A stretch of 64,000 nt of DNA. It comes from Podarcis filfolensis (lineage: Eukaryota). The notes below the pieces were generated by a model that was not told the DNA's origin, did no database searches, and was given only the letters and a program-made list of their open reading frames with translations. The stretch lies in NCBI GenBank assembly GCA_964270895.1, contig OZ185440.1. The stretch is one strand, 5' to 3'. Below are positions 33,237 to 56,805 of the stretch, in pieces; positions within the stretch are counted from its first letter, which is position 1; the number at the start of each line of letters is the position of its first letter. The position numbers and the translations under genes were made by a program.

Positions 33237-36200
33237 TTAAATTTGTTCCAATGCCTTCAACTTTGTCTGAAAGAAAAACATGCAAGTCACAATTAAACCT
33301 GCACTGCTTATGGAGAATGTGGACCAGTAAGAAGTAAGCAGCACATAAGCGGCACACAAAGCACCACCAAACCATTCTACGTTCTAAATCTTATATTAAT
33401 AATCCAAAAATTGAGACAGAAGCCACAAACAGAAAACTCATTTAAATTTTGTCCTAAAGGAAGATTCAGTCTTTAAAGTTCCTTTAGCCAGGCTCCTGAA
33501 TCTTACTTTTGGACACAATTTGAATGAGTTTTCTGTTTGTGGCTTCTGTAGTAGATCTTGTACCTTGTTCTCTCAATTTTTGGATTATTAATATAAGATT
33601 TAGAACGTAGAATGGTTTGGTAGTGCTTTGTGTGCCGCTTATAATGCTGCTTGCTTCTTGCTGGTCTACAAGAATTGGCAGCATAGGTTCATTTCTTCAG
33701 TATGGAGAATGTGGAGCAAAGCTTTCGGTCAGGAAATGTATGTAGCAAGTTCCATTTGTTCTGATCTCACTAGAATGGGTGTACTTCAAACCTTGCAGTT
33801 AAATTATAATTTCATTTATGTCATAGGAGAGCTGCACTGTGGCTGTTGCTAGTTGACAAATTGTTCCATTCATAAGTAGGGCTATAGCCCAATTTTACCT
33901 GTTTTCTTGAAGTCTCCTGCAACATTAATTCTGCAATTTTTCTTCCAGAGGGTTCCTTATTGTACAGATCTGTTGTCTCTGGCAGATAAGATTGATCAAT
34001 ACTCTGAAACAAATGACAAGGTCAGCTAGGATGTGATGATCTAATGTGTGGTTAGTTTGTGCTCTGAACAGTTACTGGTAACCTTTTTAGTATACATGAT
34101 TTCTGACAATCCACTATAAACAAGTCACCTGGCTCTGTTTTACAATTTGGCTGCACAGAAAATTGATAAATGGTAAACAAGAAAGTGAGATTGCTTTTGG
34201 TTTTCTCCAGTGGATGGTTAATTAGTATGCTCATCCTTTTGTTTTCCTGGGTGGAATGAAAAGTTTGTGATTAGATTCACTTAGCTAGTATACGTACCCC
34301 TGATGTATATCTGAGTTCATCCCATCTTCCATCTGCTATGCGCACAACCACAGATGCACCTGGCACCAACTGGATCTGGAAGTTTCAAACTATAGCATTA
34401 AGTACATTCTTTTATATGTGTGATTGTTGAACAAGAATAATGATGAAACGTTGGGGATAAAGTAGGGCTTACATAGATTGCAGGCGCCTGTCATACCTGA
34501 GGCTGTTGAGGTTTTCATATAATTACAGAATATCCAAGTGCCTCCTTACTCTATACTGGAGCCTTCTACTCCAGGGTTAGTAGACCACATAAATGTTCCC
34601 CATTGCACCCAAATGAATCTGTAAAGCAGTGGTTCTCAAAGGGTGTGGCAAGAAGATTCAAGGACAATCAAATATTTAAACATTTCAGTGTAGTATACAG
34701 TAGTATAAAAAAAATGTATTTGCAGACTATGGATAAATATATTTACAAAAAAACACTAATTTGAGTTTCTTTTCTCTCAATGTATTTCTTACCAAACAAT
34801 TTGGTATGGCGTGAGCAAGTTTTTATTCTGGAAGTGTGGCCGAAAGAAAAACATTTTAGAACCACTGGTTCAGGTAAATTTTCAATTTAAAGATTACATT
34901 ATAAAGAAACATAGTCTTGTACATTGGTTTATCTGACTTGGCAGTCTTCAGGGAGGATCTCTCTGCAGCACAAACACACATTTTGGAATCCATTTGTATG
35001 ATGGTGGGGTTGATGTTGCAAACCACCTTCTGTCTTGCTCCCAAAAATCTTTGCCAGCCATGCTCCTTGGAACTTTCTGCACTTGCAGTAGTGTTTGAGA
35101 AAATTGGGGTTTGTGTGGTCTATCTTTTGCATCAGTTTTTGTTACTACCCTGTATAATACGATCTAGAAAAGGATTGCAAGTGCTCCCCTTACTTCACCG
35201 TTTTACTTCTTGGATAAGCTTTGTGAAGCTACTGCTCTATGCTTAACTAGTCTCATACCTCTTTCTTTTGGAGCATGCTCTTCATAATGCTGCTGCATTT
35301 CCCTTCAGATAAGGAAGCCAGGATGATCTGTTAAGGAAAGAACAAACCTTGAACCAGAAAAGAACAAACCACCTACTGTTTCTTTGCAGCATTCTTTTAG
35401 TAGACTACTGCAAGAGATTCCTTAAGTGAGAGAAATAGTGAGAAGTGCTCCCAAAACAATACAAAGTAACATTTTTAAAGCTTACTAATTTTGTACACAC
35501 CCCAAACAACATCTTGAAATTAGAAACTGATTGCTGACTTTGGACTAAATTATAGTAGTGTGTAAAAACAAGTGGGTCAAGAGCTGGTGACACGTAAGCC
35601 AAAGATGGGGTGGGGAATGCTTAGCAGTTATAGGCACTGGTTCATTGCTTTGCACCATCACCACCTCCAAAAGCTGGGAGAAATAGTTGCCATTTGTACC
35701 CTTTGTCATTGCTAAGATATTTGCAGGCATTAAGCGTACACAAGTAGGGACTTCAGAAAGTACTGAATTCTGTGGGGATGAGCCATCAGTTCTTAACTGA
35801 TGCTGCATTCACATAAAGCTCAAAAGTGGGGAAGTGGATAACTTTCAGCTTGACAGAATGGTGATATACAGGTGATGCAGGGAAACATTGTACAGAATAT
35901 ATGTGTGTGTGCGCACGCTAACAAGTGCATGCCCCTGCCCAGCTGCTGGAATTTGGTTGTTTTTGCAAGAAAATTGGCATGTATGTCTAACTTTTAGCTG
36001 ATTGGTTAAGTTAACTATACCTGACTGGGAGCCCCCTGGTATAAGGGCAGTTGGTAAATGCCAGTGTTGCAGTAACCTCTGGAAAACACATGAAGAGCTG
36101 TCCATGCCCCACTTTTCTGAGTGTAATGTAACTGTTCCCCTTTTAGCATGACTCTTCTTTGTGCTGCTTGGCATTCTTTTTCACCCGAGGCACATTGGGC

Positions 36201-55600: not shown

Positions 55601-56805
55601 CATTCTTTTTTACTGTTGGTGAACACAACGCTAATAGAATTTCAGATGGAACTCGAGAAAATCAACACTAGTGGCCAAATTCTCTGAATCTATAGGCCAA
55701 TGTTTCATACAACCTTTTCCATGCCAATGTTACTAGTTGATCTTTCTAAGCCTAATGGTAAGTTTGTCAAATGCTCTAAAAACACGTCTAGCGGGAGACT
55801 GCAGCTTATTGTCCCTTAGCTCAACTGAAATTTTGGGGTGAGGGAGCTTTCTGAAATGCTTGTAAGAAGTGCATAAGCTGAAAGCTAGACTTGTGGTGCT
55901 GTACTCAGATGATGAGCCCTTTGTTTCATCAGCTCAATTTTTCATCTGTGGTGACAAAAAATAAAAAGGCATCAGAGATGAGGGGAAATAACCTAAGTGT
56001 TTGAATGAATTAACTACTAAGTAAAGTAGTTTAGAATGGAAGTACTGTAAACAGAGAATCTATGATGGAGCAAAGATCTGCGCTCCTCTCTTCTTTTCTG
56101 CAGTACCTCTTCAGTCAGTTTCTTCAAGGCCTGGCTGTCTGAAACACTTCCTTTATGATCAAAGCTTCTGGAGTGGTGTGCTTGTTCCTCATATTCCCCA
56201 TCCAAGTGATGCTTCTTTGTTTTTGGTGCTTGTAGCTGATGATGCTGTGCCATAGAAACCACCACCCAGAAAAGAAAGCCAATAAATGGAAGGGGGTGTC
56301 AGGAAAATATATTGTTACTCAAATGCAAATTCATGGAAGCTAAAATATCTAAACAGAAGGCTTCAAAACCCTCTCAGTTCATGAAACACCTCGAAACTGG
56401 GGTGGGGGAAAATCTAGGCACACCTTCCTCCTCCTTCTGCTGTATGTGTACACAGGAAAAAGTTTAAAATATTGATAGCTTTTTGGTATGACTGGAAAAG
56501 CCTTATACGCCAATGCAGTCAGCAAAATTGCAGCACATAACTTTCCCCCTCCAGCACACAAGCTAGTAGGTCTAAAATGTTGGGGGAAAGTCTAGCAAAC
56601 ATTGCCAGGTCTTTACCATGCTGTCCGGAGTCTCTGCTTTCTTAGGTTCTTTCCCCTTACAGAGGGCTTGCCTGTTTCGGTATCTGGCATCAGATGCAGT
56701 CTCCTCTCCAATGCAGAATTTTTCCATGTGCTTTTCTAGCAGCCGCCTGGAGCGGAACCCCATCCCGCAGTTGGCACAGTGGAAAGCCACCAGATCCGTC
56801 ATCAT
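46611..56805 (-). CDS. CCDC17: Coiled-coil domain-containing protein 17 (at least 692 aa, 14 confident exons; 3' end unresolved)
   Basis: Minus-strand exons: 56805-56617, 56244-56107, 55207-55145, 54388-54271, 53481-53322, 53098-52979, 52536-52403, 51456-51322, 50393-50167, 49798-49713, 49302-49087, 48578-48356, 48020-47910, 46768-46611 = 2078 nt, GT-AG and in phase. Matches human CCDC17 motifs as I recall them: [129 protein letters not shown]. Confidence 0.93.
49597..49662. repeat. 24-bp minisatellite x2.8 in a CCDC17 intron
   Basis: Unit GAAAAAAAACATATGCTGAGACAG. Confidence 0.9.
52207..52250. repeat. (TG)22 microsatellite
   Basis: Uninterrupted TG run followed by a short (AT)n. Confidence 0.95.

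Follow-up and report, generated by a model that had tools for sequence, protein, structure and literature searches.

A lizard CCDC17 locus predicted to encode an ancestral long protein with four C2 domains

The window analyzed here is a stretch of 64,000 nucleotides (nt) from contig OZ185440.1 of the lizard Podarcis filfolensis, whose minus strand carries a long series of coding exons between 56.8 and 33.2 kb. Our splice model, for which Hemicordylus and Podarcis proteins served as guides and every junction was refined, joins this series into a single CCDC17 gene of 31 exons (Table 1) with GT-AG sites throughout and no internal stop codons. In the order of the protein, a zinc finger is followed by a coiled coil of ~300 residues, a proline-rich stretch, a first C2 domain (C2-1, or module 1), a linker of ~65 residues, C2-2, a unit made of C2-3, a helical linker and C2-4, and a short tail. 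Over 1340 amino acids (aa) the window model is 99.2% identical to a protein of Podarcis lilfordi (P0083), and the two C-termini are identical. Exons 15-31, which are 17 exons beyond the mammalian version of the gene, encode 761 aa, and in a 39-sequence alignment this downstream half is conserved equally to the N-terminal half. From the sequence, we consider it probable that all of these exons belong to a single gene that is orthologous to CCDC17 and has kept the long ancestral form. A first-pass annotation of the window had proposed that CCDC17 may be the N-terminal half of a ~1450-aa protein with four C2-like modules, and had counted 4362 nt and 1453 aa by splicing position 46611 directly to 43692; the ortholog-guided model arrives at the same figure.

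That proposal was based on one motif order recurring four times, and the recurrence is far beyond chance, with 12 of the 12 quoted motif strings present at the given places in the spliced translation. When all six frames of the 64 kb are translated, the pattern [GA]W[AT].[LI].[VIL] is found exactly four times, always on the minus strand and once per module, compared with a mean of 0.57 and a maximum of 3 in base shuffles of the window. A second pattern, G...[LI].[LI][YFR].{2,3}P, has six matches in the window, four of which follow the four GW-type sites. The modules have motifs in common at strands b1, b6, b7 and b8, as well as a hydrophobic b5, and the b8 motif, [GA]-x-[LV]-x-[LV]-R-[LI], is found in every module (exons 13, 19, 24 and 29). 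The b1, b6 and b7 motifs had been correctly described in the first-pass annotation; the b8 strand and its motif had been missed, and the modules are longer than was then thought.

We computed two AlphaFold2 (AF2) models on the Podarcis protein, using alignments of 60 and 52 orthologs. The model of modules 1-2 has a predicted local distance difference test score (pLDDT) of 76.5 and a predicted template-modelling score (pTM) of 0.47, and includes a disordered segment (residues 205-267) that corresponds to exon 14 and the start of exon 15. The model of modules 3-4 and the tail reaches a pLDDT of 87.4 and a pTM of 0.85, with the helical linker packing both sandwiches. In both models, the pLDDT of the sandwiches is mostly >90, and DSSP assigns to each module eight co-linear antiparallel strands in the same order. 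In a Foldseek-independent scan of 48,161 PDB representatives, all 50 of the top 50 rows were C2 or tandem-C2 proteins; the best matches are of the AIDA/PI3K/DOCK type for modules 1 and 3 and of the Munc13/cPLA2/PLC/dysferlin type for modules 2 and 4. As modelled, the four modules are eight-stranded C2 folds, which agrees with the C2-like beta-sandwiches that the first reading of the sequence had anticipated. Their likeness to the calcium-independent C2 domains of PI3K (PF00792), AIDA and DOCK DHR-1 is limited to 7-19% identity, with Pfam scores below the cut-off, and the catalytic or guanine nucleotide exchange factor context of those proteins is absent here.

The long form of the protein is widespread. 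A HMMER search with the 61-residue module-4 exon against 1.84 billion representatives returned 30 proteins, many of them 1320-1572 aa in length and matched near residue 1200, and members of this set, placed on the window by tblastn, are colinear with it between the zinc-finger exon (56.8 kb) and exons at 34 kb. Approximately 45 long entries (~1230-1540 aa) share the exon 14-15 junction or are colinear across it, and the majority of them are vertebrate RefSeq models bearing the name CCDC17; those of frogs, salamanders, turtles, lizards, alligator and basal fishes measure about 1400-1480 aa. Long RefSeq models called 'coiled-coil domain-containing protein 17' come from toads, many frogs, a caecilian, turtles, geckos, other lizards, alligator (isoform C), gar and some eels, while long entries are labelled 'uncharacterized protein' in a salamander and bichir, 'hypothetical protein' in Albula and other eels, and 'CCDC17' in amphioxus (1475 aa). 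In invertebrates, long proteins (1320-1570 aa) keep the order of the window model all the way from zinc finger to module 4 and span amphioxus, a hemichordate, a brachiopod, a nemertean, an annelid, molluscs and a flatworm, and entries named 'uncharacterized protein' were found in Ptychodera, Lingula, Tubulanus, Owenia, Saccostrea, Patella, Liolophura and Macrostomum; cnidarians (jellyfish, sea anemone and coral) contributed fragments of the downstream half. The long architecture is conserved across bilaterians, and CCDC17 is the N-terminal half of a longer protein in these ~45 entries, the 99%-identical Podarcis protein and the invertebrates included, much as had been proposed.

The long non-mammalian CCDC17 models correspond to the same protein end to end (99% identity for Podarcis lilfordi, 1340 aa; 46% for Bufo bufo XP_040264098.1, 1454 aa; 36% for amphioxus), but they are database predictions without a described architecture, on which Pfam marks only CCDC17_middle_coil and CCDC17_C. 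Precomputed matches to both families (PF28454 and PF28455, respectively) are present on P0083 and on all of the long orthologs, and matches to zf-C2H2 on the exon-1 region of orthologs are weak. Because CCDC17_C is absent from proteins that consist of the downstream half only, this family covers module 1 alone, and modules 2-4 are without a family. The long gene is already in the databases; its four-C2 architecture, the unassigned modules 2-4, the mammalian loss described below and the inconsistent treatment of the locus as one gene or two appear to be undescribed in the literature that we searched. Two further observations concern related models. Sharks, sturgeons, paddlefish, gar, bichir, lungfish and axolotl have a short 'CCDC17-like' paralog of ~640-670 aa alongside CCDC17. 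In colubrid snakes, two CCDC17 models (P0110 and P0111, 918 aa) end just after b8 of module 2, which reflects either another read-through end or a snake form without modules 3-4.

Human CCDC17 (Q96LX7, 622 aa) and mouse CCDC17 (Q8CE13, 565 aa) are orthologs of the lizard gene by position next to NASP and by sequence. They have the zinc finger, coiled coil and module 1 in common with the lizard protein but are without modules 2-4, and have ~760 residues fewer. Residues 378-615 of the human protein and 333-564 of the mouse protein align to module 1 and the linker only, with 41-45% identity, and the mammalian proteins therefore end where exon 14 ends; the same two proteins are the top Swiss-Prot fold matches (E 3e-25 and 8e-24). 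A profile of modules 3-4 matched 44 proteins, none of them from a mammal or bird, and with a four-module profile no mammal or bird was present among the best 120 of 298 matches. Likewise, the Swiss-Prot fold search found no reviewed human or mouse protein resembling modules 3-4 beyond the generic C2 fold. Within the limits of these searches, the comparisons support a loss of exons 15-31 in mammals and suggest that birds have lost them too. This is consistent with the earlier idea of an ancestral protein truncated in mammals, given that full-length proteins extend from flatworm and amphioxus to reptiles and that human and mouse CCDC17 stop at the exon-14 equivalent.

The boundary between the two halves lies at intron 14. 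Exon 14 (46768-46611) has the acceptor ...tcaaatgcag/ and the donor AAAG/gtgaga, and exon 15 (43692-43551), with the acceptor ...ttatttcag/, joins it in frame through an Arg codon (AG/G). The 99%-identical Podarcis protein and the Hemicordylus RefSeq isoform X3 both have this 46611/43692 junction. Since translation continuing past the phase-2 GTGA donor would stop at once (Arg, then TGA), the CCDC17 gene would also yield a short isoform ending just past exon 14. An AATAAA hexamer at 46618-46613 (minus strand), which shares bases with the Asn-Lys codons closing exon 14 and lies a few bases short of the donor, could be the poly(A) signal of this Arg-stop isoform; other species do not conserve it at the protein level, and several poly(A) hexamers are found in intron 14. 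Mammals, and apparently birds, would then have fixed the short form and lost exons 15-31. The otherwise disordered exon-14 linker contains a near-invariant Y-T-[GD]-x-V-D-P-P-P sequence (VDSPP in this lizard) at approximately aa 670-685, a motif that is also present in the short 'CCDC17-like' paralogs and may serve for docking.

Several observations, given in this paragraph and the next two, weigh against reading the stretch as one gene for four related C2 domains with a part to play in cilia. The exon 14-15 junction is itself predicted from sequence. No Pfam C2 family scored above its gathering threshold, the best being PI3K_C2 on amphioxus module 3 (18.9 bits against a cut-off of 26.4); modules 1, 2 and 4 had no Pfam C2 match, and one precomputed PF00792 match was found, in Xenopus tropicalis. 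Pfam scans of ten single exons returned nothing useful, and querying the ESM Atlas with one exon yielded noise only. A profile of the four-module region had no matches among all PDB sequences, so that no solved relative is detectable by sequence. Finally, the functional proposal outlined below draws on two published mentions of the short human protein, together with analogy.

Another challenge comes from the annotation of the locus. In ~25 species, including sharks, Amia, many frogs (Xenopus laevis 'ccdc17.L', 784 aa), several lizards, coelacanth, lungfish and gharial, RefSeq divides it between a short CCDC17 and a 640-805-aa protein labelled 'uncharacterized LOC', and short CCDC17 models of ~570-750 aa occur in many species. 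We considered whether there might be two adjacent genes, a short CCDC17 polyadenylated in intron 14 and a downstream three-C2 gene with its own promoter, in which case the fused models would be read-through artefacts of the predictor. Such an arrangement would fit the position of intron 14, the longest intron, within the disordered linker, and mammals show that the first half is able to work alone. It would also fit the short models themselves, since all those inspected that reach exon 14 (from reptiles, frogs, caecilians and sharks) end in ...[KNQE]-R at the donor read-through; one short model, from Lerista (645 aa), ends before exon 14. The LOC models, however, start at points scattered over residues 698-782 of the window model, several of them at a Met within strand b5 of module 2, so that only half of that C2 domain would remain. 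With starts that are scattered, cut into a domain and have no first exon in common, they look like 5'-truncated models. When an internal promoter in intron 14 was considered, we found neither a common first exon among the split LOC models nor a CpG island in the intron (observed/expected ratio 0.13), although such absence is not proof against one. Fused proteins, moreover, are present in at least six invertebrate phyla and ~45 vertebrate species, the junction is in phase with good splice sites, and the model from the nearest relative joins both halves. We regard two genes as unlikely and retain the reading of a single long CCDC17 gene.

The relationship of the four modules to one another was also considered. 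Profile comparisons with hhalign gave P = 6e-7 for modules 2 and 3 (92% probability), P = 2e-5 for modules 3 and 4 (144 columns, with the register kept from b1 to b8) and P = 0.006 for modules 2 and 4, and common descent of modules 2-4 is well supported by these sequence profiles. For module 1 against the others, two alignment sets gave P values of 0.0035-0.05, which are not significant beside reversed controls of 0.006-0.018. This result would be expected if the four modules were C2 domains of separate origin, joined by domain accretion, with the shared motifs reflecting a constraint of the fold; the exon structures of the four modules also differ, in both the positions and the phases of their introns, and, as noted above, the best structural matches of modules 1 and 3 are not those of modules 2 and 4. 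In contrast, the significant similarity of modules 2 and 3 and of modules 3 and 4, the latter pair end to end in register, argues against separate origins, as do the four family-specific motifs on the same strands. The module 1 alignments, though weak, span the whole domain, and their strands stay in structural register from b1 as far as b6 or b8. Furthermore, among the 30 Swiss-Prot matches listed for module 3, the sole single-domain matches are to module 1 of mouse and human CCDC17 (E 7e-9 and 1e-8), with no PI3K C2 entry among the 30. Separate origin is in our view improbable, and fold, register and motifs in the models make it likely that module 1 shares a common ancestor with modules 2-4. 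Thus, the paralogy put forward in the first-pass annotation holds by profile for modules 2-4, and is not statistically demonstrated by sequence for module 1.

That exons 15-31 are a decaying, untranslated relic in this lizard is hardly credible: mammals appear to have lost these exons and some snake models stop after module 2, but here none of the 17 exons is disrupted, the reading frame continues through them and their splice sites are canonical, their product is 99% identical to the Podarcis lilfordi protein with cross-phylum conservation equal to that of the N-terminal half, and a pseudogene was rejected because frame and splice sites are intact.

The window as a whole is a vertebrate synteny block with no runs of N in 64 kb, in which CCDC17 lies tail-to-tail with NASP. 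We take it that CCDC17 adjoins NASP in mammals as well, with GPBP1L1 expected on the other side. Clear coding exons were not seen at 57200-64000, where this presumed order would place the 3' end of GPBP1L1, and that segment may be 3' untranslated region or intergenic sequence. Upstream of the NASP exons, a GC-rich stretch at 14000-16000 (0.53, versus ~0.40 elsewhere) is probably the CpG-island promoter of NASP. Intron 7 of CCDC17 contains a (CA)n microsatellite at ~52210-52250, which reads as a Thr-His repeat in one open reading frame (ORF). Three plus-strand ORF fragments, two within intron 19 (40717-41133 and 41202-41351) and one upstream of CCDC17 (57693-57896), resemble the C-terminal part of a CR1/L2-type LINE (long interspersed nuclear element) reverse transcriptase.

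Table 1. Coordinates of the predicted long CCDC17 gene, its parts and neighboring coding exons in the 64-kb window.
Feature	Position	Strand	Remarks
Long CCDC17 coding sequence	33237..56805	-	31 exons, 4362 nt, 1453 aa; TAA stop at 33239-33237
Exon 1: start codon and single C-x2-C-x12-H-x5-C zinc finger	56617..56805	-	Translation; colinear with ortholog residues 1-65
Exons 2-9: coiled coil and proline-rich stretch, aa 64-428	50167..56244	-	tblastn colinearity; PF28454 CCDC17_middle_coil precomputed on orthologs
Module 1 (C2-1), exons 11-13, aa 457-640	47910..49302	-	Part retained in mammalian CCDC17; Pfam CCDC17_C
Exon 14: disordered linker, aa 641-692, VD-[PS]-PP motif	46611..46768	-	pLDDT <50
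Intron 14, 2918 nt	43693..46610	-	Longest intron; CpG observed/expected 0.13; site of annotation split and of mammalian protein end
Module 2 (C2-2), exons 15-19, aa 693-922	41453..43692	-	
Module 3 (C2-3), exons 20-24, aa 923-1156	38298..40600	-	Sandwich ~aa 944-1099
Exon 25: part of helical linker packing modules 3 and 4	37733..37907	-	Helices at residues 221-264 of the second model (model B), pTM 0.85
Module 4 (C2-4), exons 26-29, aa 1216-1409	34298..37243	-	
Exons 30-31: C-terminal tail and stop codon	33237..34003	-	
NASP exons	21.7-31.6 kb	+	SHNi-TPR match and large acidic exon
Aldo-keto reductase exon	~3.1-3.4 kb	+	

The predicted architecture has implications for considering what CCDC17 might do in cilia. 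CCDC17 is a marker of ciliated cells (PMC13096173), and the human protein appears in a list of 'ciliary tip proteins' recovered with DNAAF9 by co-precipitation from mature multiciliated cells (PMC12700831); in the literature that we searched, no paper links CCDC17 to C2 domains. A similar design is known from CCDC33, which has a coiled coil and three C2 domains, is located at the extreme distal tip of the cilia of multiciliated cells, bundles microtubules and requires its C2 domains (PMC12796433). The same paper proposes that CCDC33 is orthologous to C2D1 of Tetrahymena, a protein located on the surface of tubulin in the central pair at the tip (PMC11642885). Chain 3A of PDB entry 9nw3 (ciliary tip central pair), which we infer to be C2D1, matches both AF2 models as a tandem C2 protein. 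CCDC33 and C2D1 differ from CCDC17 in the number and order of C2 domains (CCDC33 has three) and share no demonstrated sequence homology with it, and the ortholog that has been proposed for C2D1 is CCDC33, not CCDC17.

The first-pass annotation had instead drawn a comparison with C2 proteins of the ciliary transition zone, and part of this comparison stands at the level of the fold. Among Swiss-Prot fold matches, the N-terminus of NPHP4 ranks first for modules 3-4 (E 1e-11, residues 29-510) and high for modules 1-2 (E 7e-11). Like CCDC17, NPHP4 is a ciliary protein with a tandem beta-sandwich, but the TM score is only ~0.23 and identity 10-13%, with no relation at the sequence level, and NPHP4 is a transition-zone protein without a zinc finger or coiled coil. 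The C2 families of NPHP4, RPGRIP1L and CC2D2A (C2-C2_1, CC2D2AN-C2 and others) gave no Pfam match down to E = 1. The suggested kinship with transition-zone proteins is limited to a likeness of fold, which does not bear on localization, and the one statement found in the literature lists human CCDC17 with the proteins of the ciliary tip (PMC12700831).

We suggest that the coiled coil would dimerize the protein and that the C2 array would bind phosphoinositide membrane and/or the tubulin lattice in motile cilia. By analogy with CCDC33 and C2D1, long CCDC17 would probably sit at the ciliary tip. A fuller proposal, which we offer as a long shot, is that long CCDC17 might be a second C2-array protein at the tip of motile cilia and the metazoan counterpart of C2D1, in which a dimer with eight C2 domains bridges the ends of central-pair or doublet microtubules to the tip membrane; the short form would be an ancient isoform, terminated in intron 14, that became the sole product after the mammalian, and perhaps avian, loss. 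If true, this would amount to a lineage-specific simplification of the ciliary tip.

Thinking on CCDC17, a widely used marker of multiciliated cells, rests on the short mammalian protein. The locus exposes a systematic inconsistency of annotation, with one gene in ~45 species and two in ~25, and the downstream half of ~760 residues carries no Pfam family. If ancestral CCDC17 has four C2 domains, it would have its basic design in common with CCDC33, NPHP4 and further C2 proteins of cilia, and binding to the membrane and/or microtubules at the ciliary tip would become a testable hypothesis, for which Xenopus, which has the long form, would be an apt system.

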